DNA of 64,000 nucleotides from Hypanus sabinus (GCF_030144855.1 NC_082730.1:4092001-4156000); one strand, 5' to 3'. Shown: positions 2,206 through 41,687, counted from the stretch's first letter. Notes: generated by a model from the sequence alone, not told the origin. Made by a program: numbers and translations.

Positions 2206-2493
2206 AGCCTGTGTCAGGAGCAAACATCACGGTTCAGAACATCACCGGGACCTGTAACCTCACCCTGACCTGTTCCGTGGCCTCTGGCAACCCCATCAGC
2301 TTCAGTTTGTGGAGAGGAGGAGAAGTTACAGGAGACAACAACAGCCATCACTTCTGGAGACACGAAGAGACGATACAGGTTCATTGCACAGCAGAGATGG
2401 AGGATGTGGTGTACGGGTGTAAGGCCAGCAACCCCATCAGTGAGGACACCGCACAGGTCCGGCTGGGGAACGTCTGTAATCTGGACACATGTC
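2206..2493 (+). CDS. Copy A exon: C2-set Ig domain (CD2/SLAM type)
   Basis: Acceptor 'ccctcag|ag', donor 'tgtc|gtgagt'; 288 nt, phase 1-1. Translates (E)PVSGANITVQNITGTCNLTLTCSV...YGCKASNPIS...VCNLDTC, matching the CD2-family CxxxLxC and YxCxAxNPxS pattern. Confidence 0.93.
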
Positions 2494-4238
2494 GTGAGTG
2501 TCAGAGGAAGGAGTTGGGATTTAGTTATCTCCCCATCCCAGGAGTCTGAGATGGGACAGCACAGAGGATCTTCACAAAACCATAAAAATTTACAGCAGAT
2601 GACAGACCTTTTGACCCACAATGTTGTGCTGACCATGTAACCTACTCTAAAACTGCCTAGAAATTCCCCATAGCACAGCCCTCGATTTTTCTAAGCTCCA
2701 TGCTCCTATCAAACAATCTCTTAAAAGACCCTATTGGATCTGTCTCTACCAGCATTGCTGGCAGTGCATTCCATGCACCCACCAGTCTCTGTGTGAAAAC
2801 TTACCTCTAACAGCCCCCTTGTACCTACTTCTAAGCATCTTAAAACAATGCCCCTATGTGTTAGCCATTTCAGTCCTTTGATACAGCCTCTGGCTAGCCA
2901 CGCGATCAATCCCTCTCATCATCTTACACACTTCTATCAGGTCACCTCTCATCCTCCTTTGCTCCAAGGAGAAAAGGCCAAGTTCACTCAACCTATTCTG
3001 GACAGGTACATTGGAGCTCAGAAAAATAGAGGGCTATGGGTAACCCTAGGTAATTTCCAAGGTAAAGACAAGTTCGGCATAGCTTTGTGGGCCGAAGGGT
3101 CTGTAACGTCCTGTAAGTTTTCTATGTTTGAGAAGATGAGCAATTACAGATTTGATTCCTCTACCATTTCATAAATTCCTGTCACAAACATTTCCCAAAT
3201 TGTCTGTCAACAGTATTGTTCTTTTGTGTACCAATGGGAGCACTGCAGAGTAGGAGGGGATAGAGGGGAGTGATGTGATAATGACTGTAGGAAATAGGGG
3301 ATGAGGGGATTGAGGTGTAGGTTGCAAGTCAGTGATGCGATGTTGATTATAGGGAATGGGGAAAGAAAGGACTGAGGGGTATCAGAGGGGAGGTGATGGG
3401 TTTGGAGGTCAATGATTTGATGGTGATTGGAGGAAATAGGGATTGTGGGATATTAGAGGGGAAGGGTTGGAGGGACTGAGGGTTATTGGAAGGGAGGGGA
3501 GTGGGGTGAAGAGGTGGGGGTTGGAAGGAATTTATGTGATGGGGATTGCAGGGTACTGAGGGACCATGTTGAGGTGACAGGGAGTTTTTTCCGACTGAGG
3601 AGGGATGGAGTGAATTCATCAATCCTGTGTCACTGGGAGGGTGAGGACTGGATTCATCAGGAAATCTTTTCTCCTCTGTGTTACAGCCCCTAAAACAACA
3701 GCGGTGCCGATTGCACTGACCCTGGTGTTCAGATTGTCAGTGGTGCTGATCCTCCTGATCTCTGCTCTCACTGCGATCCTCATGGTCACATGGAGGAGAA
3801 GACCTGAGGGAAGGGAAGTAACTTCAGAGACTGAAGGCAAGTGGAGCTGACACCCTGTCATTGAGTCTAGTATTTGGGAGAGGGAGAGAGAGGGGGTGGG
3901 CTGGGGTGGTGACAACAGGGGTGGGAGAGAAGAGTTAGATGGGGTAAAGTGGGAATGGTTTCAATACAGGCCCTGTCACCTCTGCTTTCTGTCCCACAGA
4001 CCCACTGGAGACAGGCATCATTGACACAGACCTTCAGAAGAATCGCTGTATCTGGCAGCCCCCTAGGGGGAATGACAGGGTAATGACGGACACCTTACAC
4101 CTGGAAAGAGGGCACCCAGGGACCACTCACAGTCCTTGGGGCAAACTGAACATAAGGCCTGCATGTAATCTGAACAATCCCAGAATCAACCACAGGTCCC
4201 TGTCACTGGGGATCGTTCCAACCACCACTGCATATTAA
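2206..4238 (+). CDS. Copy A: CD2/SLAM-family-like Ig receptor, partial (C2+TM+cytoplasmic exons), activating-type
   Basis: join(2206..2493,3687..3836,4000..4238 or 4079). All junctions are phase-compatible and the frame is open. TM has Arg (AGA 3731-3733). ITIM Tyr is replaced by Asp (GAC 4023-4025). The V exon is predicted about 130 bp left of the window by offset to copy B. Confidence 0.85.
2580..3129. mobile_element. Two fused CR1 3' fragments (minus 2580-2999, plus 3000-3129)
   Basis: Typical CR1 3' UTR/tail sequences in opposite orientations, fused by the deletion seen relative to copy B. Confidence 0.7.
3245..3610 (+). repeat. G/purine-rich low-complexity tract upstream of TM exon (paralog 38955-39400)
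   Basis: Dense GGG/GGGG runs and ggga/gagg motifs on the + strand, with very few C. Confidence 0.75.
3687..3836 (+). CDS. Copy A exon: transmembrane segment with Arg
   Basis: Acceptor 'tgttacag|cc', donor 'gaag|gcaagt' (GC). 150 nt; PKTTAVPIALTLVFRLSVVLILLISALTAILMVTWRRRPEGREVTSETE. Confidence 0.9.
4000..4238 (+). CDS. Copy A cytoplasmic exon (ITIM-dead); ends at donor 4079 or reads through to TAA 4236-4238
   Basis: Acceptor 'gtcccacag|ac'; (D)PLETGIIDTDLQKNRCIWQPPRGNDR|gtaatg. The frame stays open to TAA at 4236-4238. There is a 9-nt deletion relative to B. Confidence 0.8.
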
Positions 4239-5200
4239 TACTCTCAGTTACTCCAAAATCTGCTTCTGCAAACTCCAGTCTCATCAACAACATTGTGTGG
4301 GTAGTCATCAGTACTAAGCCCCCAAATCTCAAAGGCACTGAGTGGTATCAATGGTAAATGTGTCAGATACCGTTTGTAAATGGATCTATAAAGTAAAGTA
4401 AGTTGAGAACCTGTGTCAAGTATGGCCCGAGCAAAAATACCTTCAGTCCATTTGGACACACCAGAGTCTGGTCCCTCTAAACCTTCACGAATATTGTTTT
4501 GCACTTTAGTATTTCCCTTGATGCACTGATTGGAACGTATTCTGTCTGAGAATCCAGTCCATACCTATACAGTGTTCACCCGCAGTTTTGCATCTTTAGT
4601 TCTCTGATTGATTAACCGTGATTTACTTTCTGTAGATTTTCGTGTTACTCATAGTTTCACTTGAAATGTCTATCTTCTTCACAGTTGTTACAGAACTTCC
4701 AGGTTTGGTACGTTTTGTATTCAACTGAACAGGAGAGTTGGAATATTCTGATGCGGGAATAAAAATTGTGGTAAATGCTCTGTAAATGCTGCCCCATGCA
4801 AAGTTATCATTTTCCAGGGAATAACACCCTGCACCAGCAAAAAATAAAGTGGAGTTATATTTACTGATATTAAAACTTTAACAGTTAATAGAGGGAAAAG
4901 AAAAGGGTCCAGCACAGCTAAGCCAGTCTGAATGGGCAGATAAACGTTGGAGCTTTGATTTCTCACTTGCTGAACCCATGATCTGCATGGAAGACACCAG
5001 TCACCTTTGGAACTTCCCTTGAAAGCCATTTTGAATGAACTGGCTAACTCAGGAGCATTGGCTCTTCCTGCTGAGAACCATTTGGCTACACGAAGCACTT
5101 CTTGCAACAGTGACTCTCCCTTGAACAGTGTTCACTGAGCATCTTCGCTTGTGTTCTCCTCCACTGCTCCTGCCAACCAAACCTCCCCGGACTGGCTGAC
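4233..5200 (-). mobile_element. Probable Ty3/Gypsy LTR-retrotransposon remnant (aspartic protease fragment)
   Basis: ORF 4244-4504(-) contains ARAILDTGSQLTLL, a retropepsin D-T-G motif. The extent beyond about 4510 is uncertain. Confidence 0.5.
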
Positions 5201-6036
5201 ACAACATTCCCAGCCTGAGCAAGTAGTCCTTATCTCAGCCGAAACCAAAACACTAAGCTATGAGGCTTAACGATGAGAAAACATTGCATTTGCAGAAAAA
5301 CTGCTAAAATTAAAATACCTCACAGCATACCAGTAGAAACACAATAAAACATGTGCTTAACTTGGGAATGACACAGGCAAATTGTTTGAATGTGAGCAAT
5401 GACTCAATGGCAGCCATAGAGATGGAGGGCCAATGGGCCTGTTTCTGTGACTCCACCCTATTTGACTCCCTTCACCAACACATCACAGTTCAGAGTTCAA
5501 AGTATATTTTATTATCAAAGTGTGCATATATTATACAAGCTTGAGATTCATCTACTTATGGGCAGTCAGAACACAAGAATCTCAAAAGAACCCATGAAAA
5601 AAGAAAGTTAACAAACACCCAATGTGCAGAGAGAGAGAGAGAGAGAGACATCACACCAATCATGCAAACAATAAAAGCCAGCCAAAGCATTCAGGATGAA
5701 AGCGAGCCCATAGACACAAACCCTGGAGGATCCGGAGCAGGCCCACAGCCTCAGCTTCAGTTCATCACACAGCAGAGCAAAATGTCATGGAGCTGACACA
5801 CATGGACCCTGAGGCATCTGGAGCCAGCTCACAGCCTCAGTGTCAATATGCAGCAAACCAGCCAACACGCACGACCTTTTCAATCGATCTGGCTCAGGGT
5901 TTAAATCATCCACTATAACACCACACACAGTTCCAGTCACGGTCTGTGCCGATCAAAGTCCCAGGTCTGCTGCTCTTGGACCAGATTCAGACACGGTCTG
6001 GGCTGGGTCACACCCGGGTGTAGAAGGGAAACTGGG

Positions 6037-6720
6037 ACCATAAGACCATAAGATATAGGAGCAGAAGTAGGCCATTTGGCCCATCGAGTCTGCTCCACCA
6101 TTCAATCATGGGCTGATCCAATTTTTCCAGTCACACCCACTACCCTGCCTTCACCCAAACCCTTTGATGCCCTGGCTAATCAAGAACCTATCTATCTCTG
6201 CCTTAAGTACTCCCAATTACTTGGACTCCACAGCCACTTGGGGCAACAAATTCCACAGATTTATCTCCCTCTGATGAAAGTAATTTCTCTGCATCTCAGT
6301 TCTAAATGGACGTCCTTCAATCCTGAATTCATACCTTCTTGTCCTAGACCCCCCTACCATGGGAAATAACTCTGTTATATCTAACTTGTTCAGGCCTTTT
6401 AACATTTGGAATGTTTCTATGAGATCCCCCTCATTCTCCTGAACTCCAGGGAATACAACCCATGAACTGCCAAACATTCCTCATGCAGTAACCCTTTCAT
6501 TCCTGGAATCATTCTGTAAATATTCTCTGAACCTTCTCCAATGTTAGTATAGTATTTCCAAAATAATAAGTCCACAGCTGCACACAATCCTCCAAGTGTG
6601 GTCCCACGAGTGCCTTATAGAGCCTCAGCATCACATCCCACCTCTTATATTCTATACCTCTAGAAATGATCGCCAACATTGCATTCGCCTTCTTCCCAAC
6701 CAACTCAACCTGGAGGTTAC
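6037..6720 (-). mobile_element. CR1 LINE 3' fragment
   Basis: ORFs 6217-6477 and 6509-6778 resemble the CR1 ORF2 C-terminus (RGIEYK...LYKALVGPHLEDCVQLW); the (cttatggt)-type tail is at 6037. Confidence 0.85.
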
Positions 6721-8494
6721 ACTTACAATGGTGACAACATATGTGGGCCTGGAGAGGATTGCTGGGAATCAAAGCCATAAACAGGGAACTGTGGATTTTT
6801 TATGGATGTTGCGGGAAGTGGTTGGGAAAGTGGGAACTTACTCCAGCAATAACTGATGAAATGAAGGTTGAGGGAAGGGCTAAAGTGGTGTGTGGCAATG
6901 AGCTGGAATCAGCTTCAAGTTCACTTGGGACCATTGGGGATTGAATGCAGGAATCGGGGACCAATTTTCCTTAACTCATCTTTCACCATTACTGCTCAAC
7001 CTGAAATCCCATGTAAGGAACATAGATCATGGTCTATTCATTTTCAGAGATGCTGCTTGACCTGTTGAGATCCTACAGCATTTTGAGTGTGTTGCCCTTG
7101 GTTCTGAACATTACCGGGACCTTTGACCTCACCTGGTCCTGCTCCATGTCCTTAGGGTTCTTACCAGCTTCAAGTGGTGAAGGGGAGGAGACTCCAGCAT
7201 ACATCACCTCTGGAATCATGGAGAGATGGGTGAGGTTCATCACACAGATTAACCTGTGGATGGGCAGTGTGATGGGGCAGTGTAGGTGGCGCTTCACTTT
7301 ATGTCAAACATGTGCACATTTATTTGTTTTACAATAATCACACTGTTCTCAGTTCAATCTTGACAAATATTTATGCATTTAAAACATCAAATTAAATCAT
7401 GATCATCCTTGTCCAGGATGCAACCCAGCCCTTGTAATGCCTACTGCCATCTGAAAACATCCAAGATGTGAATGAAGAGTACGTACTCTCTTTCCAAAAC
7501 CAGATTGAACTGAGTTACTGACTCTCAGCTGACCTGCAGTGTCAGAGCCAGAGTCAGGTAGCAGTTTGTGGTGTCCTGCCATTTTTCAGTTGAGTAGCAG
7601 TGCACAGTATGAACTGTTCCCTAAAGCGAAAGACTACTCTGAGTGATCTCCTGAGGGGATGATCCCTCAGTAGGTACTTCTGTCTTTCATCAGTACTGTG
7701 GGTCTCTTAATTGTTGTCCAGCCTATAGTCGTTAAAGCCTTGTGCATTCTGTTTAATCTTGTCAAGCTTATTTTTCTACATCCTGTGATTATTTAAAGTG
7801 GACTCCCAATTAACACAAAATGGTGGGTCATTGAGTTCCGAAAATAATTTGTTTCACAGCGTCGCTCGCTCAGGCCACCAATGTTCTGTTGGAATTCCAA
7901 TGTATGAACTCATCTTCTATCTCCACATGGGAGTCTATCGCTCCTCTGCACCTGGGTTCAGTTGTCTCCCAGCACACACCGTGACACTGTCTGCTACAAT
8001 GCAGGTAGTCAACAGCTAGGTCCAGGTATGACTCTAAGCTGAGCAGATTCTTTTGAAATGTTTCACCTCAGACTTCTGCCTCTTGGTCGTGCTCTTCTTG
8101 TACACTTGATAAAAGTGATGGTGGTGAGTCTTACCCATGTCCCACCTAGACTTCAGAAAAGGGAATGTCCGGAACCTTTGGAATGAATCCTGGAGTCGGC
8201 CACCTTCCAGCAGCCAGTTGTTACAGAGCTTACGTGGACCCCACTCATGTGCACGTCAGGACGAACTCTGCCCATGCGAAGTGATCGATTGAGTATGAAA
8301 CTGGCCTCATAGTGAACATCAGACATGTTTGCTGCTCAAATTATAGATGGTCTCCTCCGTCAGCCCCCTTCAACTGTTACACCACTCCCACTGGAAATTA
8401 AAATGAAATGATTCATGTTGAGTTCCCCCCGCTGTCCCCCTGCATCCAAGAGACAGGTGGCTACAATTAAAATGGACTCCACGGGGTGTGGAGA

Positions 8495-8750
8495 TGTGGC
8501 ACAACCCCGGTGAGACTCACCATCTTTTATAGATGTACCATAGCAAGCATCCTATGTGGATGCATCACAGATTTGTATGGCTACTGCTCTGAATATGAAA
8601 TGGCAGAGAGTTGTGAATGCAGCCCAGTCTGTCACACAAAGCAACCTCCCATTCATGGACTGTGTCCTCACTTACCACCGGCTCAGGAAAGGAGACAACA
8701 CAATCAGAGAGCCTATCCACCACTGTCATTCTTTCTTCCCTCCCCAGTCT
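8495..8750 (+). mobile_element. Rex-Babar-like LINE C-terminal fragment
   Basis: LTIFYRCTIASILCGCIT...QRVVNAAQSVT...PIHHCHSFF resembles the post-RT region of Rex-Babar-type LINEs. Confidence 0.7.
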
Positions 8751-10204
8751 GCCCCGACACTATCCCACTGACCCACAAATCTGTCTTTCTCAGCCCAACA
8801 CCCGACCCCTCACCATGCCTTCCAACAACACTCTCCGCAAAGTCTCCACTTTGTCTCCCTTGTAAAGGCCGACTCCACAGTTCCTCCACCGTCCCCAGCA
8901 CACAGATGCACAGACACACACAGGATCAGGATGGAGACAGCAATCGGAGGGTGGGGAGGGGGTTGAGGACTGGGGTAGATCATCCACTGTCATATTCAAT
9001 GGTGCGAGAGGCTGGGTTGCTTGAGGGGCCAAAGCCAACTCCTGCTCTTATATCCCTCTTTGTGTGTGTCTGTTTGTACATGTGTGAGAGAGAGAAAGAG
9101 TGGGTGGGGAGATCTTCAGAACTGAGTGAAAATGCAGACTGAGAGGGAGAGACACAGACTAAGAAACCGAGAGAGGAATGTGAAAACAGTGACTTCTGAA
9201 GAGAAATGAAAGGTAAATTGAAAAAGATGTCCTCTCAGAGACTATGAGAAACAGGAGAATGAAAGGACAAGAGAGAGATGGGCAGAGAGGCTGTGGGTAA
9301 GGGTACAGAATCTGAGAGAGAGAGAGAGAGCTAGAGGTGGACAGGGACTGGTTGGAGATGTGGAGATGGTTAATGGGATGTGTTTGAGTTACAGCTTGTG
9401 CTCTGTGCCTGTTTGGAGTAGTATTGCCTCTTCCCCATCACAGTGTATTAGATAGCTGTGACATAGCCAGTTTCCACTGCTTTAGTTATTACCCATCGAC
9501 CATCAAGCTCTTGAGTAAATGTGGATACCTACCCTCACTGCCCCATCATTAAATGTCTTACACCAAAGATCTCACTTTAAGGATTCTTTATCTCATTATC
9601 TCATGTTCCCAGTATTCCTTGCTATTCATTTATATTTACATTTGCACAGTTTTTTTTGTTTTCACTCTGGAGGATCTTTCATTGATCCTGTTTTAGATAC
9701 TATTCTTTAGATTTGTTGAGCATTTCAAAGGAAAATAAATCTCAGGATTCTATATGGTGATATATATCTACTTTGATAATAAAGTTTACTTTGCTCACTT
9801 TGAAGTGTACCTGTTTCCAATGCTTGTTCACCAAGCACCAAATGAAGTTGCAAGTTTTAAGTTCAAGAACAAGTTTCAAGTTTAATTATCGTTCAATTAT
9901 ACACGAATAGAGGCAAACGACAAGGTGCAAAACACATACCAACAACATACAGCACACTTCACATAGCACATTGCACAAATAGCACGTTTGGTTATTCATC
10001 AGTACAGAACAACATACAGTCACAAAGAGAAATAAAAATATATCGCCCAAGTCTTGAGTGGTCCTGGTCCAGCTTGTTCTTTCACCAAGTGAACACTGGA
10101 GGGCAGCAGAGACAGGAGGGCTCAGACACCAACCCAGTATGAAATCTGATTTGGACAATCCACATATTATAGTGAGAATGGTTACAGGGACAGTGTATTC
10201 CGTG

Positions 10205-13200
10205 TGGTATGTGGGAAGTCTGGGACACCTCCAGTCTCCCAGATAAACACAACTGCACCAGGTGCACCGAGTTGCAGCTCCTGAGAGAACATATTAAGGA
10301 ACAGGAGCTCAACTCGATGACCTTTGACTCATGTGGGAGAATGAAAAAGAGATAGAAAAGAACTAGAGGGAGGTAGTTACCCCAGGATTACAGGAGTGAG
10401 GTAACTGAGAGACTGCCAGGAGAAGGAGGGGAAATGTACAACCAGTGCAGAGTACACCTGTGGCCATTCCCCTCAATAATAACTTTAGATACTATTGAGA
10501 GGGATGACCTAACAGGGAGGAGCCACAATGACCAGGTCTCTGGCACTGAGTTTGATGCTGTGTCTCAGATGAGCGGAGAGGTGAAGAGGACTGCAGTATT
10601 GGTAGGAGATTCCTTCATCGGAGGAAAAGAGAAAAGGTTCTGTGGGTGAGATAGAGACACACAAATTGTATCTTGCCTCCCTGATGCCAGGATCAGGGAT
10701 ATCTCGATTCTTGACCGTGGCATTCTCAAGGGCAAAGTTGAGCAGCTGAAGTTTTTGTACATATTGACACCATGACATGGGTAAATAATGTGATGAGGTC
10801 CTGAAGAGAGATTTTATGGAGCTAGGTAGAAAGCTGAGAAACAGGACCATCAGGATAGTGATCACTGGATTGTTGCCTGTGCCATGTGCCACTGAGGGAA
10901 AGAATAGGATGATTTGGCAGGTGAATATGTAGCTGAGGAACTGGAGCATGAGGCAAGGGTTGAAATTTATGGATCTTAGTGATCTCTCCTGGGGCAGCTA
11001 TGACCTGTACAATAAAAGACAGGCTACACCTGATCCCGAGGATCTCCAATATCCTTGTGGGCAGGTTGGTTTAAGTTGTTTGGGTGGGTTTAAACTAGCT
11101 CAGCAGGGGGTTGGGAACTGGAATGGTAATGCGGAGGATGAGCGCTATCAGATGTAAATAGATGTAATGTGTAGTGAGACTCCTAGCAGGCAGACCTATG
11201 CGATAGATAAAAATTGCAGTAAACCGGAAGAGCTGTAATGTAAAGGTGTTCAAAATTGAAAAAGGTGAATACAGAACTAAAGGTGTCATATTTGGCCGCG
11301 GGCGGTAATGGAATAAGTTCGATGAACTTGTAGTACAGATACAGATTGGCAAAGATGATGTAGGTATCACTGAATAGGCAGGAAGGCAGAGGGTCTGGCA
11401 TGGCACTGTTGATAAAAAATGAAATTAAATCATTCGAAAGAAGTGACATAAGGTCAGAAGATGTTGAATTGTTGTAGTTAGAGCTGAGGAACTGCAAGGG
11501 TAAAGAGACGCTGATGGGTGTTATCTACAGATGCCCAAACAGAGGTAAGGATGTGGTCTACAAATTGGAATGGGAGATGGGAATTGCCTGCCAAAAGGGC
11601 AATGTTACAGTACTCACAAGGTCCATCAATATACAAGTAGATTGGGAAAACCAGGTTGATGTGGGATTCGAAGAGGGGCAATTTCTAACTTATGGGATAT
11701 CTTTCTAGAACAGTTTGTGTTTGAGCCCTGTAGGGGTTAGCTATTCTAGATTGAGTGTTGTGCGATGAACCAGAATTGATCAGAGAGCTTAAAGTAAAAC
11801 AATCCTGAGGGGTAACTTATCATTATGTAGTCAAAATGACGCTGAAATTGGAGAAAGAGAAGCTAAAATCACATCTTACAGTATTACAGTGGAGTTAAAT
11901 ATATCACAGGGGCATGAGAGAGGAGGTGTCCAGTACTGATTCAAGAAAAAAATAACACAGGCAGGGATGATGGCAGAGATGCAATTGCTGCAATAACTGA
12001 AAGCAATTCAGATGACACAGGATTTATAAATTTCAAAGTGTAGGAAGTATACTAAGGGCAAGATGACACAACCATGGCTAACAAAGCAAGTCAAGGCCAA
12101 CATGAGGTCCAAAGTGAGGACATATAATAGAGCAGAAAATTGGCGAGATGTTAGGGGAGTGGGAAGCTTTTAAATACCAACAGAAGGCAACTAAATGTCA
12201 TTAAGTAGGTAAATGTTGAATAAATCTAGCCAATAATATTAAAGACAATACCAACAATTTCTTCAGGACCATAAAGTGTGAAAGAGAGGCAAGAGTGGAT
12301 TTTGGACCACTGGAAAATGATACTGTTATGGGGACAAGGAAATGGCAGAAAAGCTGGATAAGTATTTTGCATCAGTCATACTGTGGAAGAATCTAACAGT
12401 GTGGAGGAAGTTACAGGTATCAGGGGGTCATGTAATGTGTAAAGTTACCACTACTAGAGAGAAGGTGCTTGGGACATTGAAAGGTCTGATGATGGATAAC
12501 TCACCGGGAGCAGATGGTGTACACACCAAGATTCTGATAGAGGTGGTTGAACAGATTATGGAGGCATTAGTAATGACCTTTCAATAATCATTAGATTCTG
12601 TAAAGGTTCCTGAAGACTGGACAATTGCAAAAGGAACCCCACTCTTCAAGAAAAGAGAAAGGCAGAAGAAAGGAAATTAAAGGCCAATTAGTCTGACCTC
12701 AGTGGTCGGGAAGATGTTGGATTCAATTGTTAAGGATGTGTTTTCAAGGTTCTCAGATACACAAGATAAAATAGGCCATAGTCAGCATTGTTTTCTCAAA
12801 TGAAAATCCTGCCTGACATATCTGTTGGAATTTTTTGAAGATATAACAAGCAGGAATAGACAAAGGAGAATTGGTTAATGTTGCAAACTTGTGTAACACC
12901 CTGGGAAAGTGTTCACTGCTAACATAATGGTCTTTCTGTAGAAGCTGTGTTTGGAGTATTGTGAGCAGTTCTGGGCCCTTTATCTTGAAAAGGATGTGCT
13001 GAAACTGGAGAGAGAACAATGGAGGTTCATGAAAGTTATTCCAGGATAAATTGACTTGTCATATGAAGTGCGTTTGATTGTTCTGATCCTGTAATCAATG
13101 GAAATAAAAAGAATGAGAGATGACCTAATTGAAACCTACCAAAATTGTAAAAAGTCTTGATAGAGTGGCTGTGGAGAGGATGTTTTCTGCGGGTGGAGTT

Positions 13201-13465
13201 TTGAAGACCCAATAGATTGACATCTTCTTCGAACAGATTTGTGGAGGAACTTGTTTAGCTGGAGAGTGGTGAATCAGTGATATTTGTTGCTACAGGAAGC
13301 TGTGGAGGCCAATTCTTTATGTACATTTAAGGCAGAGGTTAATAGATTCTTGATTGATCACAGCATGAAGGGATACAGGGGGAAGGCAGGAGACTGGGGC
13401 TGAGAGGAAAACAGATTAGCCATGATGAAATGGCAGAGCAGATTCAATGGGCCAAATGGTCATTT
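10205..13465 (+). mobile_element. Long, heavily decayed CR1 LINE (ORF1 Zn-finger/esterase + ORF2 remnants + 3' UTR)
   Basis: C-x-x-C ORF1 start near 10205; AVLVGDSFIGG esterase-like block at 10590; NSPGADGVH RT block at 12500; CR1 3' UTR ending near 13465. Confidence 0.85.
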
Positions 13466-14224
13466 GGAAATCCAGCAGCACATCTTGTTCACACAACAAC
13501 TCAGTCAATGCAAATCCCCCGTCATTGGTCTCTGCAGAGAACGAGTAAACCAAACGCAGTATTTTTTTGTCCAACAGGGTCTTGTGATCACTACACTAAA
13601 TATCCAAAGCAATCAACCGTACTTTTTTAGGGCTGCGCACAGTCTGGGCACAAATGTACGCAACAAGTCCAGCTCCATCAATATCGAGCAAGTTGCTGCT
13701 GGGGTAGTCCTGCTGTCATTGATGTTCTGAATCTCCAGCAGTGACTTGCGGATGGAAAATAGACGTACAGGATGAGCAAATACACGGGAGTGGTCGCTGT
13801 GTCTGAGCACGCCGCCATCGTTCCAGAAGCAGATGTAGAGTCTCGATGTGGAGGGGCCCCTCCCTCCTCTGAGCTCTCTCATGTCTGCTTGGTGGGCAAG
13901 ACCAGTTGTAATGGGGAACTCTGAGTAGAGAGCAGTAACAAATATTTGAGACATGTTGAGTGGACGTGCAGACCCCTCATCCATTGTGGTCACTCCCGGG
14001 TTCTCTGCTTGTCCACATCCATGAAGCTCTTTGTCTCCTTCAGCGTCTCTGTCTGCTGCTCTCTCGGCTGCCCTGTCCATTCTCTGACTTCCTCTGCTGT
14101 CCATTGGGTCAAACAGCACAGAGATCGTCCCTTTGATCCACTGAGGGAACTCCAACCATCAAACACCACGTTACACCAATACCATTTCATTAATCCCATC
14201 ACCTCCCCCAGTTTCTACCACTCA

Positions 14225-14425
14225 CCCTCTCAGTGGGGGCAATTTATAGTGGACAAGTAACCTACCGCCATTGTATCATTGGAATCTGGGATGAAATAAT
14301 AGCACCCTGGGTAACCCGTGCCTTCACTGGGAGAACATGCAAACTCCACACAGCTGGAATCTAAAACCAGGATGAAATTAGGTTTGCTGTAGTTGTGAAG
14401 CAGCAGAACTTCCTGCTGCCCGTCT
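14225..14425 (-). mobile_element. V-SINE-like element
   Basis: The reverse complement contains the V-domain core 'tgtgtggagtttgcatgttctccc'. Confidence 0.7.
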
Positions 14426-15364
14426 GTATGTGATTTCTCTCTTAACTTCAGAGACAACTGGACTCCAGCACCATTTTCTGTTTCACAACCTCAAACACTT
14501 CCCGCCACCATGTTACAACTTTGCAAGTCTTTCATCAAGGTCCCACACACCTCGAGCTGCTGAAACCCTTCATTCGTATTCTTGTTGATCAATCTGTTGT
14601 GTTTTGTTGTCACTGGATCTGTTTCATCTGACTGACCTGTGCCAGACTCGCACTGGATCTGGCACAAGGCCACAAACAGTATTAATTTATTGCTCTTGCC
14701 CCATGTCTCTTCCTTTGTTCAACACTGTTCATCCAAACATGCAGCTCAGTCTTCGTCAGGTCACACATGCTGTTTTTTTGATAAGCCTGTCAGTCTGACA
14801 AAATCAAAAAGAGCTGTTTATTTGGAAATGATCGCTCATTTATCAGATTGTCGATCTCACTGCATCTACTTATCGCTGCTCTGATCTAACCATCCCCAGG
14901 GGGGAGCCAGCTCACAAAATGGTGGCTGTAGAGAACACACATAAAATGGCAGCCTCCATTCCTTCCACTACAAGAATGTATTTGCTTTTACTGCTTCCCC
15001 TGTCCCTGGCTCTTTCGGTGTTCTATAGTTTTTTAATCCCTTCATCACTGACAATCCACAGGATCAGCATTCAATCCCTCACTTTGTTGTACGAAAGCTT
15101 CAGAATTCGGGGAGATGAGATTGTTTGGTCAGGTAGGCAGAGGAAGAGGCAAATGGAGAATAGAATGGAGTTTGTGTTGGATCAATGTAAATTGATGTTC
15201 TCTATTTGGAGGCTGTGTTGTCTGGTCCTACACTCCTCCACCATAACAAGCATCCTCTCTGTTGAGGTCTTTTAGCATTCGATAGGTTTTACTGCTTCCG
15301 CTGTCCCTGGCTCATTCCGTGTTTTACATTCCTCCTCATATGCTCTAAAGATGAACTGTAGAAT

Positions 15365-25837: not shown

Positions 25838-28800
25838 CCAACGACATAGGCAGGAAGAGGGATGAGGTCCTGAAGTGTGAGTTTCGGGAACTAGGCAGAA
25901 GGCTGAAGAACAGGACCTCAAGGGTGGTGTTCTCAGGATAGCTGCCAGTGCTGCGTGATAGTGATGGTAAGAATTGGAGAAGATGGCAGTTGAATGCGTG
26001 GCTGAGGAGTTGGTGCAGAGGGCAGGGTTTTACCTTTTTGGATCATTGGGATCTCTTCTGGGGAAGGTGGGACCTGCAGAGATTGGATGGGTTGCACGTG
26101 AACTCAAGGGGGAGCAATATCCTTGCAGGTAGGTTTGCTTGCATGGTTCAGGAGGGTTTAAACTAATTTGCAAGGGGGCTAGGACCCGCAGCGATTGAGC
26201 AGTGAAAGAAGTGCATGGAGCAGCACCAGATCTAGCATATAGAGAGGATTTGAGGACAGAGAAACAGAAGAAAGGGTGTAAAGGTAGTAAGGTAGAAGGG
26301 CTAAAGTGTGTACTTCAATGCCAGAAACATCAGGAACAAAGGTGATGAACTGAGAGCTTGGGTACATACAATAGTGGTCATTACGGAGACTTGGCTGGCA
26401 CCAGGGCAGGAATGGATTCTCAAAATTCCTGGATCTCAGTGCTTTAAAAGGGACAGAGAGGGGGGGAAAGGGGAGAAGGGGTGGCATTACTGGTCAGGGT
26501 TACTATTACAGCTGCAGAAAGGGTGGGTAATGTAGCAGGATCTTCTTTTGATTCAGTATGGGTGTAAGTCAGAACAGGAAGGGAGCAGTTTGTCACAGTA
26601 TGTTGACAAGTCGACTAGGGGGAATTCCATACTAGATCTAGTATTTGGTATCGAACCGGGTCAGGTCACTGATGTCTCAGTGGGTGAGCATCTGGGGGAG
26701 AGTGATCACCGCTCGCTGGCCTTTAGTACTATCATGGAAAAGGATAGAATCAGAGAAGACAGGAAAATTTTTAAGTGGGAAAGGGCAAATTATGAGGATA
26801 TAAGGCTAGAAGTTGTGGGTGTGAATGAGATGATGTTTTTGCAGGGAAATTTACTATGGACATGGTCGATGCTTAAGGATCTCTTGCAGGATATTAGGGA
26901 AAAATTTGTCCCGATGAGGAAGATAAAGATTGGTAGGGTGAAGGAACCATGGGTGACAAGTGAAGTGGAATATCTAGTTCGGTGGAAGAAGGCAGCATAC
27001 ATGGGGTTTAGGAAGCAAGGATCAGATGGGTCTATTGAGGAATATAGGGTAGCAAGAAAGGAGCTTAAGAAGGGGCTGAGAAGAGCAAGAAGGGGGCATG
27101 AGAAGTCCTTAGCGAGTAGGGTAAAGGAAAACCCCAAGGCATTCTTCAATTATGTGAAGAAGAAAAGGATGACAGGAGTGAAGGTAGGGCTGATTAGAGA
27201 TAAAAGTGGGAAGATGTGCCTGGAGGCTGTGGAAGTGAGCAAGGTCATCAATGAATACTTCTCTTTGGTATTCACCACTGAGAGGGAACTTGATGACGGT
27301 GAGGACAATATGAGTGAGGTTGATATTCTGGAGCATGTTGATATTTAGGGAGAGGAGGTGTTGGAGTTGTTAAAATACATTTTGATGGATAAGTCCCCGG
27401 GGTCTGACAGAATATTCCCCAGGCTGCTCCACGAGGCAGGGGAAGAGATTGCTGAACCGCTGGCTAGGATTTTGATGTCCTGGTTGTCCACGGAAATGGT
27501 ACTAGAGGACTGGATGGAGGCGAATGTTGTCCCTTTGTTCAAAAAAGGTAGTAGGGATAGTCCAGGTAATTATAGACCAGTGAGCCTTATGTCTGTAGTG
27601 GGAAAGCTGTTGGAAAAGATTCTTAGAGATAGGATTTATGGGCATTTAGAGAATCATGGTCTAATCAGGAACAGTCAGCATGGCTTTGTGAAGGGCAGAT
27701 TGTGCCTAACAAGCCTGATAGATTTCTTTGAGGAGTTCAACAGGCATATAGATGAGGGTAGAACAGTGCATGTGATCTACATGGATTTTAGTAAGGCATT
27801 TGACAAGGTTCCACATGGTAGGCTTATTCAGAAAGTCAGAAGGCATGGGTCCAGGGAAGTTTGGCCAGGTGGATTCAGAATTGGCTTGCCTGCACAAGGC
27901 AGAGTGTTGTGGTGGAGGGAGTACTTTAGGATTGGAGGGGTGTGACTAGTGGTGTCCCACAAGGATCTGTTCTGGGACCTCTACTTTTTGTGATTGTTAT
28001 TGACGACCTGGATGTGTGGGTAGAGGGTGGGTTGGAAAGTTTGCAGATGACACAAAGGTTGGTGGTGTTGTAGATAGGGTAAAGGATTGTCGAAGATTGC
28101 AGAGACACATTGATAGGATGCAGAAGTGGGCTGACAATTGGCAGATGGAGTTCAATCCGGAGAAGTGTGAGGTGGTACACTTTGGAAGGACTAACTCCAA
28201 GGCATAGTACAAAGTAAATGGCAGGATACTTGGTAGTGTGGAGGAGCAGAGGGATCTAGTGGTACATGTCCACAGGACCCTGAAAGTTGCTTCACAGGAG
28301 ATAGAGTAGTTAAGATAGCTTATGGGGTGTTAGCTTTCATAAGTCAAGGAATAGAGATTAAGAGACGCGAAGTAATGTTGCAACTCTATAAAACTCTAGT
28401 TAGGCCACACTTGGAGTACTGTGTCCAGTTCTGGTCGCCTCACTATAGGAAGGATGTGGAAGCATTGGAAAGGGTATAGAGGAGATTTACCAGGATGCTG
28501 CCTGGTTTAGAGAGTATGGATTATGATCAAAGATTAAGGGAACTAGGGCTTTACTCTTTGGAGAGAAGGAAGATGAGAGGAGACATGATAGAGGTGTACA
28601 AGATATTAAGAGGAATAGACAGGGTGGACATCCAGCGCCTCTTCCCCAGGGCAGTGCTGCTAAGTACAAGAGGACATGGCTTTAAGATAAGGGGAGGGAA
28701 GTTCAAGCAGGATATTAGAGGAAGGTTTTTCACTCAGAGAGTGGTTGGTGCATGGAATGCACTGCCTGTGTCAGTGATGGAGGCAGATACAATAGTGAAG

Positions 28801-28924
28801 TTTAAGAGACTACTAGACAGGTATATGGAGGAATTGAAGTTCTTGGGTTATATGAGAGGCAGGGTTTGAGGGTTGGCACAACATTGTGGGCTGAAGGGCC
28901 TGCAATGTTCTGTACTATTCTATG
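25838..28924 (+). mobile_element. 5'-truncated CR1 LINE (ORF1 end + frameshifted ORF2), absent from the paralog
   Basis: ORFs 26308-28869 carry EN and RT motifs ([42 protein letters not shown]). The empty site is contiguous at about 55650. Confidence 0.95.
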
Positions 28925-28929
28925 AGCTG

Positions 28930-29350
28930 TAGAGGAAATAAACCGTGTCTTCTTGTGTGTCTTTGTGGAGGACACAAAAACCTGCCAGAAATACAGGATA
29001 GACAAGTGTTGAATACAAGTGTAGAAATAAAATCAGTCAGCATCAATGATGAAATAACATCATAAAAATGGATAACTGACACAGGCCTGTTGATCTCCAT
29101 CCCGGAGTTTGTGCCAAGATGTCAGTAGTGTTACTCAACTTTCCGGTTATCATCTGCCAAACTCTACAGTTTCAGGAATGGTTCCTTCAGCCTGTTTCAA
29201 AAAGGAGGGAGAGAGAGAAAACTGGGAACCACTCACCTCCCCAGCTGACACTGGGAGTGGGGGCAATGTTGGAATCTGTAATAATGGGTGTGAAATCATG
29301 CTGAAGAGGAATTATCACAAAAATTCAACAGACTGGTTTCTGATGTTGTG
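28930..29350 (+). mobile_element. Old CR1 RT fragment (shared with 55655-56090)
   Basis: Degenerate match to the CR1 region FQNS..SGMVP...FKKGGREKTGNYRP; present in both duplicates. Confidence 0.6.
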
Positions 29351-30049
29351 GGTCTGACATGTCACTAGCGTAGGAAATAGACTAGGCCTCTATTCAAATA
29401 GTTCAAAATAAGTTTTATTATCAAAGTGCATATCTGTCACCACATACAACCCTAAGATATTTTCTCTTCAGGTATACTTAGCAGATCTATAGAACAGTAA
29501 CTGTAAACAGGATCAATGGACAACAAACTGTGCAAATGGAAATATGAATGAATAGCAATAAACAACCTGTTCTTGGACCTGGTGGTGCAAGTCCTGAGTC
29601 ACTTGTACCTTCTACCTGATGATAGCAGTGAGAAAGAACTTGGCCTGGGTGGTGAGGATCTTTGATTATGTCGATGATTAATGTAGATGCTTTCAGTGGC
29701 TGGGGGGGATTTTATCCCCGATGTACTGGACTGAATTTGCTAAATTTTGTAGGACTTTCACTCAAATACATGGTTCCCATACCAGGCCATAATGAAACCA
29801 GCCAGCATACTGTGGGAAAACATTGGGATTCTCCCATGGGGAATTCTTCTTTCATTGATTGTTTTCTAGATATTAAAAAGATCAAGGAAACGGGGAGAAA
29901 AAGTTTTAGCCAGGATCAGTTGAATACGTTGTGTGGTTCAAAGGTAGCACGTCCGCTTCCTGATCCTGCTCGTCATGTTGACACGAGCTCGGCAAAGTGT
30001 TCGTGAACCCGGATCACACAATGGAACAACAGAGCAGCGAGTGTGAGTG

Positions 30050-30091
30050 TTTGCATGTGTGTGTGAGTGCACGCATGTGAGTAAGCATTGT

Positions 30092-30133
<42 letters not shown>
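30050..30133. repeat. (TG)n/(GA)n microsatellite (expanded paralog 56765-57020)
   Basis: Direct reading. Confidence 0.9.
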
Positions 30134-30135
<2 letters not shown>

Positions 30136-31091
30136 ACGTATCACACAATGGGAAACTTGAGTAAGTTGTATGTGTCACAACTATGAGTTGCTTTTAAAAA
30201 AGAGAGGGATTTTTTCAGTTCTATGTGCATTGTATTTTCCCAGTGTCACCTCATGGGCATGTAATGCTCCTTCGATTGTGAACTTTTCATGTCTAATTGC
30301 TTGTCTTTGCACAAAGTGGGTTTTCAGTTTGTGTTGTAAGTGTCTCATTTGGGATCACAAGGATTGTAAAACTCTCTTTGTATTGATCACTTTTATTCAA
30401 TTTGGTTTGACGTGCTTTCTCGATCACTATGTGAGTTGAACAGAGCAGGAGACTGTGCTGTTGATAAGGATGCCTGCTTCAAATCTGTCAACCATCTCTA
30501 CAGTAGCTGTTTCGATCAGGACAGGGTTGTGTACACACTCACACTTCCTTGGGTCAACAACTAGATCTTCTGTCTTGATTATGTTGAGGTCTGTGTTGTT
30601 CTGACACCATGACAAAAGCATCATGATCACTTTCCTGCAGAGTGAACTCACACATATGACCTTCAGTAGTTTGTTTAGATTTAGACAAGTTCAGTTTGTA
30701 CTCCTCCTGGTTATTGAGACCCCTCTCTGCTTCCTTGTTACTCCTCTTCAACCTTCCAGAGTTCCCTGCATTGGGGTCCTCCTCCCAACCCAGTTTTATC
30801 AAATTTAAAGCTCAGTCTACCTCCCTTGTGATTGGATTCAGTCTGATCACAGTCTGTCCTAGTGGAACTGTACTCACCTTCTCCAGTACTAATGCCAATC
30901 CCACAGGGACTAAAAGCCACAGCAGGGTCTGAGTAAGTCCTCGCTGATCCCATCAACTGTGTCATGATGTGGTTATGGGTTGGGTAATAATACAAAGATT
31001 AAGACGCTTGTGGTCATGTATGTGAATGTAACCCGGTTGCTCAGTGTCTGGGGAGATTTTACACATTGCAGCCATTTATTGATAACATCCT

Positions 31092-31572
31092 GTACCTAAC
31101 AAAGTGGCCGCTAAAGGTATGTTCCTGGTCTTCTGCTGATGTCATGCATCATGATCTGCTCCATCAGCACTGTTGTAACGTGTGGTAATTTGAGTTACTG
31201 TCACATTCCTGACAGCTTGAACCAGTCTGGCTATTCCCCTCTAGCCTCTCTTATAAACAAGGCACTTTTGCCCAAAGAAATGCAGCTCAATTTGTTTTTT
31301 AGTTTTAATCACCACTATCTGTAATATCTGGAGATAGATGTGTTGAAAATCCCAGGAGATCAGTCGTTTCTGAGATACTCAAACCATCCCATCCGGCATC
31401 AACAATCATTCCAGAGTCAAAGACACTTAGGTCACATTTCTGATGTTTGGTCTGAACCTCATGACAATGTCTGCATGCTTTATGCATTGAGTTGTTGCCA
31501 CTGTTGGCTGATTTGGTATTTGCATTAACGAGCAGATGTCCAGTTGTATCTAATAAAGTGAACATTGAGTGT
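31092..31572 (-). mobile_element. Non-autonomous Tc1-like element
   Basis: TIR-like 'gtacctaacaaagtggcc' and 'tatctaataaagtgaacattgagtgt'. The minus-strand remnant KCDLSVFDSGMIVDAGWDGLSISETTDLLGFS resembles a Tc1 transposase N-terminus. Paralog start at about 62172. Confidence 0.75.
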
Positions 31573-32876: not shown

Positions 32877-33197
32877 CTGGGACTGCGGTTCCCCCAACCA
32901 CTGTGACCGGAACTCAGGGACACTCGGTCTCCTTACATCCTGGGATCCCAGTCGGACCGGACATTCCTGAGGTTCATTGGATTCGGGTATCGCCCAGAAA
33001 CAAGATTGTGAAGTACTCGAATGGGAAAATCACGTACTTCAGTTTCGATCAGTACAAGAACAGGATCACATTCCATCCCGGGAACCTCAGTCTGGAAATC
33101 CATGATCTACGGAGAAATGACTCTGGTGATTATGAGGTGATTTTTACAAGACATTCAGGACATGAAAATAAAACAAGAGTGCGACTGGAGGTGTACG
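32877..33197 (+). CDS. Copy B exon: IgV-set N-domain without cysteines (CD2/SLAM/CEACAM type)
   Basis: Acceptor 'tgtctcctcag|ct', donor 'tacg|gtgagt'; 321 nt, phase 1-1. ...SVSLHPG...EVHW...RITFHPGNLSLEIHDLRRNDSGDYEV...RLEVY. Confidence 0.93.
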
Positions 33198-36990: not shown

Positions 36991-37278
36991 AGCCTGTGTC
37001 AGGAGCAAACATCATGGTTCAGAACATCACCAGGACCTGTAGCCTCACCCTGACCTGCTCTGTGACCTCTGGCAACCACACCAGCTTCAGTTGGTGGAGA
37101 AGGGGAGATGTTACAGGACACAACGGCAGCCATCACTTCTGGAAACACGGAGAGACGATATAGGTTCATTGCACAGCAGAGATGGAGGATGTGGTGTACG
37201 GGTGTGAGGCCAGCAACCCCATCAGTGAGGACACCGCACAGGTCCGGCTGGGGAACGTCTGTAATCTGGACACATGTA
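36991..37278 (+). pseudogene. Copy B exon: C2-set Ig domain with in-frame TAG (37161-37163)
   Basis: 288 nt with the same splice sites as copy A. Codon 57 of the exon is TAG where A has CAG (2376-2378). Confidence 0.92.
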
Positions 37279-39479: not shown

Positions 39480-39629
39480 CTTCTAAACCAACAGCGGTGC
39501 CGATTGCAGTGACCCTGGTGATTGGACTGTCAGTGGCGGGGACCCTCCTGATCTTTGCTCTCACTGTGATCCTCAGGGTCACACGGAGGAGAAGAGCTGA
39601 TGGAAGGGAAGGAACTTCAGGGACTGAAG
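39480..39629 (+). CDS. Copy B exon: uncharged transmembrane segment
   Basis: 150 nt, GC donor 'gaag|gcaagt'; SKPTAVPIAVTLVIGLSVAGTLLIFALTVILRVTRRRRADGREGTSGTE. Confidence 0.9.
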
Positions 39630-39771
39630 GCAAGTAGATCTGAAACCCTGTCATTGAGTCTAGTAATTGGGGGAGGGACAGAGATGGGGTGGGGCAGGGA
39701 GTTGACAACAGGATTGGAAGAGAGGAATAGTTTTAGTACAGACCCTGACACCTATGCTTTCTGTCCCACAG

Positions 39772-39860
39772 ACCAAGCGGAGACAGGCATCATTTACACA
39801 GATCTTCAGTGGATGCAGAAAAATCGCAGTGTCGGGCAGCCCCCCAAGGGAATTGACAGG
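39772..39860 (+). CDS. Copy B cytoplasmic exon 1 with ITIM (IIYTDL)
   Basis: Acceptor 'gtcccacag|ac'; (D)QAETGIIYTDLQWMQKNRSVGQPPKGIDR; phase-0 donor 'agg|gtaatg'. Confidence 0.85.
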
Positions 39861-40137: not shown

Positions 40138-40928
40138 TTAGTGGGTACACTGTCCCCACATACCCGGTCACTGGGTACACTGTCCCCCACATACCCGGTC
40201 ACTGGGTACACTGTCCCCACACACCCAGTCACTGGGACACACTGTCCCCACATACCCAGTCACTGGGATACACTGTTCCCACACGCCCAGTCACTGGGTA
40301 CACTGTCCCCACATACCTGGTCACTGGGTACACTGTCCCCACACACCCAGTCACAGGGTACACTGTCTCCACACACCCGGTCACTGGGTACACTGTCCCC
40401 ACATGCCCAGTCACAGGTTACACTGTCCCCCACTGTCCCCACATACCCAGTCACTGGGATACACTGTCCCCAAACACCCAGTCAGTGGGTACACTGTCCC
40501 CACATGCCCGGTCACTGGGTACACTGTCCCACACACACCCAGTCACTGGGTACACTGTCCCCATATACCCGGTCACTGGGTACACTGTCCCCACACACCT
40601 AGTCACTGGGTACACTGTCCCCACACACCTAGTCACTGGGACACACTGTCCCCACACACCCAGTCACTGGGATACACTGTCCCCACACGCCCAGTCACTG
40701 GGTACACTGTCCCCACATGCCCAGTCACAGGGTACACTGTCCCCCACACACCAAGTCACTGGGATACACTGTCCGCACAAACACAGTCACTGGGTACACT
40801 GTCCCCACATACCCAGTCACTGGGATACACTGAACCACACACCCAGTCACTGGGTACACTGTCCCCAAACACCCAGTCACTGTGATATCATGTCCCCACA
40901 CACCCACTCACTGGGTTCACTGTCCCTG
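40138..40928. repeat. 30-bp minisatellite, about 26 units, in the last intron of copy B
   Basis: Consensus about acacacccagtcactgggtacactgtcccc, tandem without spacers. Confidence 0.95.
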
Positions 40929-41159
40929 TACACGCAGTTATGCCCAGTAGTGTGTGCATTTCTTATGATAAGTCGTGGAGTTAATATTTGTGTTGATGGG
41001 CAGTTTGTGAGTACATTGTGAATGCACTGAGAATGAGGCCATGTTGATGCTGGGTTGCTACCATTGTTTATCAGTCGATTATTGCTGATCCGAATTTCCA
41101 TCATTGTGTATTGCTTTGTATGTCCAGGTCTTTTCTGTCCATTTGTCATGTGTTGTTGT

Positions 41160-41520
41160 GCCCAGTCTCAATGTCTCCCCTCTCCAGAGTCCTTGTCTCT
41201 GTATCCAGTCTCCATGTCCTATAACTAGGTCCTGGTCTATATCTCCCTGTCTTCGTGTCTTGCTTCCCAGTCCTGGTCCGTATTTCCTTGCCTCTGTGTA
41301 CTCATCTAGATCTCCCTGTCTCAGGGTCCTGGTCCGTATCTCCCTATGTTGATGCCCTATCTCTGGCTCCCAGTCTGTATCTCCTTGTTCCTGTGTCCTG
41401 TCTCCAGGTCCTCCCTCTGTGTTCTGGTCTGTACATCCCTTACTGGGTCCTGGGCTCTGTTTCCCTGTCTGTGTTTCCCAGTCTCCAAGACTTTCTGACG
41501 CAGTGTGTCCTATCTCTGTT
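41160..41520 (+). repeat. Degenerate pyrimidine-rich tandem repeat
   Basis: Recurring 'ggtcctggtccgtatctccct' / 'tctccctgtct' motifs. Confidence 0.55.
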
Positions 41521-41564
41521 TCCCTTACATCACCCAGAGCTGACAGGTTCTGTTACTTTTGTAG

Positions 41565-41687
41565 TGTGCTGGTCCGGAGGTCGTTGCCGAGACTACCCCC
41601 ACTGAGTACGCTGCGGTGATGTACCGTGCCAGTCCCTCCCGTGGATGGCCTGAGGACAGAGCCCCTGAACAGTATCCTGTAGTCTAG
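41565..41687 (+). CDS. Copy B terminal exon with ITSM (TEYAAV)
   Basis: Branch point CTGAC plus 'ttctgttacttttgtag|', phase 0; CAGPEVVAETTPTEYAAVMYRASPSRGWPEDRAPEQYPVV*. Not listed in the ORF track. Confidence 0.85.
   Translation, partial: CAGPEVVAETTPTEYAAVMYRASPSRGWPEDRAPEQYPVV

Follow-up and report, generated by a model that had tools for sequence, protein, structure and literature searches.

Arg-type and tyrosine-motif receptor genes in a CD2/SLAM-like cluster of the ray Hypanus sabinus: candidate paired receptors

Two gene copies in the window

We analyzed a 64,000-nucleotide stretch of the genome of the ray Hypanus sabinus (GCF_030144855.1, NC_082730.1:4092001-4156000; hereafter the window, with positions counted from its first letter). 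Two paralogous receptor-like genes, copy A and copy B, lie there in tandem on the + strand, and no other host genes were found in the window. An initial annotation of positions 2,206 to 41,687 had read the two copies as activating and inhibitory partners built on a CD2/SLAM-like scaffold, differing in the transmembrane (TM) segment, in a cytoplasmic tyrosine motif, and in a terminal exon. For comparison, we used two further H. sabinus loci, L001 (encoding protein P0008) and L002 (encoding RefSeq protein P0157), which lie ~480 kb apart on CM057998.1 and do not overlap the window, together with two loci from rays of the genus Mobula, L003 and L004.

Within the window, copy B is a complete six-exon gene, and its spliced model stays in frame over 341 codons. 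The leader exon (15965–16019) reads MNTRHLLISCWLTLCASR and closes on a phase-1 GTAAGT donor; it is 94% identical to the P0008 leader (tblastn) and 89% identical to the leader regions of L001 and L003 (blastn). The V-set immunoglobulin (Ig) exon at 32877–33197 (Pfam V-set, E = 2e-9) lacks the canonical Cys pair, and its nearest database protein is 81% identical. The C2 exon follows at 36991–37278 and carries an in-frame TAG at 37161–37163, aligned with CAG in copy A, L001, and L002, so that copy B as assembled is a pseudogene or a null allele. This exon is 288 nt long and of phase 1-1, and the frame is preserved if it is skipped; actual skipping would be a hypothetical route past the TAG only.

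Downstream, the TM exon of copy B (39480–39629) translates to SKPTAVPIAVTLVIGLSVAGTLLIFALTVILRVTRRRRADG..., is 98% identical to the L002 TM exon at the nucleotide level, and contains a Gly codon (GGA, 39524–39526) that is central to the comparison below; it ends in the GC donor AAG/GCAAGT. The first cytoplasmic exon (39772–39860), 96.6% identical to that of L002, encodes QAETGIIYTDL, in which IIYTDL (TAC at 39795–39797) is of the immunoreceptor tyrosine-based inhibitory motif (ITIM) type. The terminal exon (41565–41687, phase 0) encodes ...TPTEYAAVMYRAS...EQYPVV before the stop at 41685–41687. It contains the immunoreceptor tyrosine-based switch motif (ITSM) TEYAAV at 41601–41618, with a further QYPVV after it, and matches the terminal exon that P0157 uses in L002 at 99% identity. 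The exon boundaries of copy B are those of P0157, including the spliced GC donor. A minisatellite (40142–40926; 25.5 copies of a 30-bp unit, 84% matches) occupies the last intron, between the ITIM and ITSM exons, and is also present in L002.

Copy A is represented by the 3' part of a gene only. Its V and leader exons are expected upstream of position 1, and the V exon should, by homology with copy B, sit a few hundred bases beyond the window edge. The C2-set Ig exon (2206–2493; 288 nt, phase 1-1) is intact, with an open frame, an AG acceptor, a GTGAGT donor, and the Cys pattern C-x5-C...C...C, and it is identical at 287 of 288 nucleotides to the C2 exon of L002. The TM exon (3687–3836) translates to PKTTAVPIALTLVFRLSVVLILLISALTAILMVTWRRRPEG... 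and has an Arg codon (AGA, 3731–3733) at the place of the copy B Gly. It ends in the same AAG/GCAAGT donor, and when left unspliced it reads on through ...TEGKWS to a stop at 3848–3850. The first cytoplasmic exon survives as a relic (4000–4079) with an intact donor, AGG/GTAATG; it encodes PLETGIIDTDL, with GAC (4023–4025) where copy B has TAC, and bears a 9-nt deletion relative to copy B. Homology between the copies ends abruptly at 4232 with no terminal exon of copy A beyond, and neither tblastn nor blastn found a terminal-exon relic in 4000–16000. This 3' structure is truncated alike in copy A and in the H. sabinus P0008 gene. All splice sites of copy A are intact, and its TM exon has no stop or frameshift. 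The three differences from which the initial annotation started (Arg against Gly in the TM segment, IIDTDL against IIYTDL, and a TEYAAV exon in copy B only) are all present in the DNA.

A further proposal, that R>M and R>W replacements at the inner end of the TM segment were coordinated changes in copy A, was rejected by a codon-by-codon comparison with four other genes. Copy A has Met and Trp where copy B has Arg and Arg, and P0157, P0008, P0159 (from Mobula hypostoma), and many others resemble copy A; Met or Thr together with Trp are the common states of the family, and the Arg residues of copy B are derived. Four hydrophobic replacements (V>L, I>F, G>L, and T>I), each of them adjoining the Arg, are specific to copy A in this comparison.

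The initial annotation had itself raised the alternative of a single locus whose two alleles, A and B, were misassembled. Their similarity, and nothing further, speaks for this. We rejected the idea and give it next to no credence, as the copies are only 82–92% identical (8–18% divergence), differ by large indels, and are separated by a leader exon and ~28 kb of distinct sequence, and the H. sabinus chromosome has further paralogous units of like build ~480 kb apart.

Family assignment by fold and by tail

To place the two copies, we searched 1.8 billion representative proteins, which gave 68 matches below 1e-10. The best matches were RefSeq models from rays and skates (H. sabinus, Hemitrygon akajei, Mobula birostris, M. 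hypostoma, Pristis pectinata, Narcine, and skates), carrying SLAMF5/7/8/9-like, CD48-like, and Ly-9-like names. The cartilaginous fish suspected from the sequence is thus, more precisely, a ray. The V exon of copy B scored 21.6 bits against the Pfam family Receptor_2B4 (cutoff 21), and its best matches among PDB sequences were CD48 and CD2. Cys is absent from the B- and F-strand positions of this domain (SVSLHP and GDYEVI), as it is across 32 aligned family members. Four Cys of the C2 domain (C143, C149, C198, and C217, numbered as in P0008) each reach a conservation of 90% or more in the family alignment; a C2 domain with four Cys forming two disulfides is the pattern of the CD2 family and not that of CEACAM IgC domains.

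Fold searches with Foldseek started from P0008, a close homologue, as modeled by AlphaFold2 (pLDDT 78.5). Against Swiss-Prot models, SLAMF5, SLAMF8, SLAM, CD2, CD48, SLAMF9, and 2B4 came first and CEACAM1 was not in the top 30; against the PDB, the top seven rows were chains from four entries, NTB-A, CD48, CD2, and CD58, with CEACAM1 at rank 12. By this modeled fold, the genes form a CD2/SLAM-like receptor family, in agreement with the scaffold first proposed for them.

A profile built from the 32 members gave similar scores to CEA (2.1e-18), CEACAM1 (2.1e-17), and CD48/CD2 (5.3e-17), with SLAMF6 comparable, and we therefore kept as a minor rival the reading that the family is CEACAM-like, in which case its ITIM-plus-ITSM tail and its pairing would repeat the known CEACAM1-type pattern. 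In line with this reading, one Pristis paralogue carries a CEACAM5-like name, and cartilaginous fish are reported to possess CEACAM members (PMC5112662). The C2 exon alone returned generic Ig matches only among PDB sequences (contactin, titin). Set against a CEACAM-like assignment are the structure searches, in all of which CD2/SLAM members came first, the V exon, which taken alone points to CD48 and CD2 with Receptor_2B4 above its cutoff, the four near-invariant Cys of the C2 domain, and the RefSeq names, most of which are SLAM, CD48, or Ly-9. We regard such an assignment as quite improbable.

In the cytoplasmic tails, TEYAAV is a TxYxx[V/I]-type motif found in copy B, P0157, P0215, and others, and is predicted to bind SAP/EAT-2. 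Sister ray subfamilies have tails with TVYANI followed by T[VE]YAAV; in the copy B subfamily, the first motif is instead the ITIM-type IIYTDL. The two-motif tail is the family default, and the copy B subfamily has changed the first ITSM into an ITIM-type sequence. The ITIM-plus-ITSM tail is a variant of this default two-motif SLAM tail and no special addition.

Transmembrane arginine and tail type across rays

We then compared the TM and tail regions of annotated ray relatives. In M. hypostoma, the ectodomains of P0159 (279 aa) and P0215 (333 aa) agree at 220 of 220 residues. After the ectodomain, P0159 continues as ...AVILVIRLFVVGTLLIF...RRRRPEGREVTSGTEGKSI to its stop, with an Arg at the position of the copy A Arg (VIRLF) and the ending GTEGKSI; its tail is a read-through of the GC donor, short and free of Tyr. 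P0215 has a TM segment without that Arg, followed by IIYTDL and TEYAAV. The recorded spans of the two differ (15.2 kb for P0159 and 12.8 kb for P0215), which points to separate genes. The pattern recurs in M. birostris with P0218 and P0217, which are identical at 216 of 219 residues. A second Arg-type subfamily (P0023, P0198, P0214, P0024, P0212, P0213, and P0206) is present in both Mobula species and in H. akajei. Its Arg stands 20 residues before a conserved Trp, in the same register as in copy A, and its tails are homologous to the long tail yet lack any Tyr; in Mobula and Hemitrygon, it is located on another chromosome. A search for further Arg-type members with the P0159 TM region returned only Mobula proteins. 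Among the 26 database proteins with a TM exon homologous to that of A and B, Arg occupies the TM site in 6 of 9 with Tyr-less tails and in 0 of 17 with Tyr-bearing tails (Fisher p = 3.6e-4, with relatedness uncorrected).

The GC donor itself is widely shared. It is found in both copies (AAG/GCAAGT, window 3834–3842 and 39627–39635) and in three of the four comparison loci (L002, L003, and L004, the last as GCGAGT), hence in H. sabinus and both Mobula species, and the short-tail P0008 gene (L001) has the same donor as AAA/GCAAGT. Because the short tails (...GKWS, ...SKWM, and ...GKSI, each followed by a stop) are read-throughs of this site, splicing efficiency at a weak donor may set the tail type.

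A further short-tail class was also seen in rays, skates, and sharks (P0175, P0176, P0178, P0181, P0189, P0194, P0195, P0013, P0040, and P0207). The TM segment of this class reads ...CRLRAT-(hydrophobic)-TVxVHxIS, with a His within the helix. The tail is 16 residues long in most members, against 17 in P0189 and 43 in the two proteins from sharks, P0040 and P0207.

The age of the Arg could be approached through an 18-nt tract at 3728–3745, in which four diagnostic bases are common to copy A and both Mobula Arg-type genes (L003 and L004). The shared haplotype, AGA-TTG...GTG, includes the Arg codon AGA and a synonymous TTG for the next Leu; in copy B, L001, and L002 the first codon is instead GGA (Gly) or GTA (Val), and the next is CTG. 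As selection for Arg cannot explain the silent sites, the Arg-bearing tract probably predates the divergence of the manta and stingray families, with later shuffling by conversion. A tree of the ~800-bp TM region is star-like, with support of 81/87 for (A, L001), 100 for (B, L002), and 100 for (L003, L004).

Loci L001 and L002 match the window in blocks of 87–100% identity. Between copy A and L002 (window 1–2971 against L002 11391–14378), identity is 99–100% over 1–1600 and 94–97% in flanking blocks, then complete over a 294-nt tract at the C2 exon (zero mismatches between 2198 and 2493, nearly the whole exon), then 94–95%, and ~87% beyond 2800; the 3' end of copy A groups with the short-tail P0008 gene. 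Such mosaic identity is what recent gene conversion within a genome produces, and the pattern looks like nested recent conversion tracts between Arg-type and ITIM/ITSM-type genes. The C2 domains of A and B share about 87% amino-acid identity, and, going by the C2 exon that differs at a single nucleotide, the likely partner of copy A is the intact P0157-type paralogue.

The depth of the copy A Arg can be read in two ways. Between 7 and 9 hydrophobic residues precede it and 20 follow before an RRR, which would be compatible with an outer-leaflet position such as that of the Arg in FcalphaRI, LILRA, and OSCAR, which lies at similar depth. The best hydrophobic window of 19–21 residues begins right after the Arg, which would leave the residue at the membrane interface without a partner. 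The sequence is ambiguous between the two. The TM exon of copy A has its homologues among the uncharged TM exons of this same family and is not an imported subtype. It reads TLVFRLS, and with no Asn at −3 it does not conform to the NxxR motif; the Mobula Arg types (ILVIRLF and TLVIRLF) likewise have no Asn at −3. On this point the likeness to FcRgamma-type TM receptors (LILRA, OSCAR, GPVI, FcalphaRI, and NCR1), drawn in the initial annotation, falls short.

The main rival to an activating role arises here, namely that the Arg-type short-tail members, copy A among them, act as non-signaling decoys or ligands resembling mammalian SLAMF8, SLAMF9, or CD48, which would display the same ectodomain and lack inhibitory motifs, with an interfacial Arg and no adaptor. 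A hydrophobic window that starts straight after the Arg and the missing NxxR would suit such a role, as would the existence of short-tail members without TM charge (P0008 and P0158) and the many relatives named SLAMF8/9-like in RefSeq. It accounts less well for an Arg found at the exact same position in two subfamilies and at least three species, in Tyr-less members only, for an Arg tract that copy A and Mobula have in common down to its silent sites, and for the hydrophobic residues that place the Arg at the depth known from FcalphaRI, LILRA, and OSCAR. We consider decoys or ligands of this kind unlikely, though deserving of more weight than any other rival.

Comparing A with B, the ratio of nonsynonymous to synonymous substitution rates (dN/dS) is 1.4 in the C2 exon and 3.8 in the TM exon, the latter from 49 codons and also compatible with relaxed constraint; V exons across paralogues range from 0.7 to 2.0. 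These exons are short, and the high values fit a fast-evolving immune receptor family. A TM ratio of at least 1 would also be expected were copy A a decaying fragment, its tail cut by a rearrangement or retroelement and its TM and Y>D changes no more than neutral drift. The abrupt end of homology at 4232 with the loss of the terminal exon, the Y>D change and 9-nt deletion in the first cytoplasmic exon, and the fact that no annotated database protein matches the copy A TM exon all lean the same way. Decay of this kind is nonetheless improbable in our view, since the C2 exon is intact and almost identical to that of an annotated gene, every splice site is intact, the four TM replacements specific to copy A leave a good TM segment free of stops and frameshifts, and the Arg haplotype is held in common with annotated Mobula genes. 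An open reading frame (ORF) at 4247–4564 (− strand), supposed to mark a Gypsy-like junction, matched no Pfam family.

The remainder of the window holds duplicated and mobile sequence. A block at 23350–31142 is duplicated at 52157–62224 (85–93% identity); it represents sequence of the intron-1 type that belongs to the tandem unit after this one, and intron 1 of the P0008 gene (L001) is 93–94% identical to it. A second leader exon was not found in the window. Between copy A and the copy B leader lies a decayed C2-like relic (7101–7246, + strand), reading VLNITGTFDLTWSCS...HHLWNHGE with a stop and a frameshift; a stretch upstream of the L001 leader is 80% identical to it. ORFs at 20820–21755, 27349–27942, and 63037–63999 (+ strand) match Pfam RVT_1 and are of the long interspersed nuclear element (LINE) type, lying in the long first intron of copy B and in intergenic space. 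On the − strand, ORFs within 58156–58700 are LINE-like by translation alone, and an ORF at 53769–54245 has a Pfam ALKBH8_N match.

Candidate paired receptors and their precedents

Considering these data together, we think it probable that the window belongs to a large tandem CD2/SLAM-like cluster of a myliobatiform ray encoding KIR-type paired receptors, with Arg-type members set against inhibitory Tyr-motif members. The copy B type (leader, V, C2, TM, ITIM-type exon, and ITSM exon) is the family default, and under this model Tyr-motif members would serve as inhibitory or switch receptors acting via SH2 phosphatases or SAP-type adaptors. Copy A would belong to an older Arg-type lineage, its ectodomain held by gene conversion near-identical to that of intact inhibitory paralogues and its Arg placed in the outer part of the TM helix. 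None of its possible splice forms has a tyrosine motif, be it the read-through after the TM exon, the form with the Y>D exon, or the form whose terminal exon has been lost. Arg-type members would then be unable to inhibit and would probably pair through the TM Arg with an Asp-bearing adaptor carrying an immunoreceptor tyrosine-based activation motif (ITAM). We infer that copy A is transcribed and that its Arg is buried in the membrane; given the two readings of Arg depth and the lack of NxxR, coupling of Arg-type members to an ITAM adaptor is likewise inferred, at roughly even odds.

The pairing first proposed for A and B stands in part. Charged-TM, Tyr-less receptors and ITIM-plus-ITSM receptors with near-identical ectodomains do coexist, but copy B is not an intact partner. 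Several observations weigh against the paired-receptor model. The proposed partner, copy B, is broken by a nonsense codon, and the V and leader exons of copy A lie outside the window. The NxxR Asn is absent from copy A, and the helix could start just after the Arg, leaving it at the membrane interface. The association between Arg and Tyr-less tails is phylogenetically non-independent and realistically reflects about two to three lineages, each kept across species, and the TM dN/dS has its alternative reading of relaxed constraint. P0008 has a tail truncated like that of copy A and yet a Gly at the Arg position, so loss of the tail can be separated from the Arg. In Mobula, the Arg-type genes retain intact IIYT[ND]L and terminal exons past the same GC donor, which means that their short tail depends on not splicing and that an Arg-plus-ITIM isoform is possible. 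Finally, the Mobula ITIM/ITSM partners P0215, P0217, and P0163 have an outer-TM Lys (AVILKIVL) two residues before the Arg position; a charged TM segment is therefore not exclusive to the Tyr-less type, and charge alone does not define the class.

Known systems provide several points of comparison. An expansion of CD2/SLAM genes in Xenopus is reported by Guselnikov et al. 2011 (Immunogenetics 63:679), as quoted in PMC6557307 and PMC4536121. This SLAM-like expansion comprises at least 70 genes, and some members have an FcRgamma-type TM segment with NxxR (PMC6557307, PMC4536121). In principle, SLAM-like receptors with a charged TM segment thus have a precedent, and so does the organization seen here. 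Xenopus and rays both have a lineage-specific expansion of V-C2 receptors in which some members have positively charged TM segments instead of relying on an ITSM tail. The Xenopus TM segment is of the NxxR type that also occurs in leukocyte receptor complex (LRC) and FCRL receptors, whereas the ray Arg lies in the native TM exon, one base from the Gly of its paralogue and with no Asn at −3. The ray version thus differs from the Xenopus precedent in its origin by a point change in the native TM segment and in its missing NxxR.

The origin of the ray Arg is closer to that seen in KIR. Activating KIR, which derive from inhibitory KIR, are described as having a TM segment like that of the inhibitory forms save for one basic residue, together with loss or truncation of the ITIM tail (PMC6557307). 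Partner ectodomains are homogenized in both systems, and the route to the basic residue would in each be a point change in the native TM segment (PMC6557307). KIR differ in having an LRC Ig scaffold and a mid-membrane Lys paired with DAP12, whereas the ray receptors have an outer Arg.

The mammalian SLAM family (ITSMs in SLAMF1-7; short tails in SLAMF8 and SLAMF9) resembles the ray receptors in fold, domain order, TxYxx[VI] motifs, the presence of short-tail members, and the placement of each Tyr motif on its own small exon. One difference is the first motif of the copy B subfamily, which is the ITIM-type IIYTDL in place of the ITSM TVYANI of sister ray subfamilies. To our knowledge, mammalian SLAM members are not organized as charged-TM and ITIM pairs with near-identical ectodomains. 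Paired receptors are also known for CEACAM1/CEACAM3, including Xenopus CEACAM (PMC5112662, PMC2832619), where the V domain also lacks a disulfide, the inhibitory tail also combines ITIM and ITSM, and gene conversion keeps the ligand-binding exons similar between partners of opposite signaling (PMC5112662). Activating CEACAM members have ITAM or ITAM-like tails, however, and not a charged TM segment, and the ray fold is nearer to CD2/SLAM. Our literature searches found no paper on SLAM-family pairs in cartilaginous fish, which is weak evidence of absence.

Returning to the paired-receptor model, a fuller and more tentative account can be given, which we hold to be possible but short of probable. 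Myliobatiform rays may keep an ancient activating SLAM-family lineage predating the manta/stingray split, produced by a Gly/Val-to-Arg change in the native TM exon and by loss of the tail through an unspliced weak GC donor or truncation, and kept like its ITIM/ITSM partners through ongoing gene conversion. Such a lineage would be an analogue of KIR, Ly49, and NITR in cartilaginous fish, on a SLAM scaffold, that uses an ITAM adaptor without NxxR. RefSeq already includes genes of these pairs, with automatic names that mislead (SLAMF8/9-like, CD48-like, and hemicentin-like).

Paired receptors have arisen repeatedly (KIR, Ly49, LILR, CEACAM, NITR, and Xenopus FCRL/SLAM) and are read as footprints of arms races, whether between host and pathogen or between self and non-self. 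If true, pairs that rays build on a SLAM scaffold would bring the oldest jawed vertebrates into this convergence, and the route to an activating receptor would be legible base by base, from a one-base Gly>Arg change through tail loss by intron retention or truncation to gene conversion of the ectodomain. Little is known of the innate lymphocyte receptors of elasmobranchs, and the cluster would then offer this group a candidate natural killer (NK)-like receptor family.

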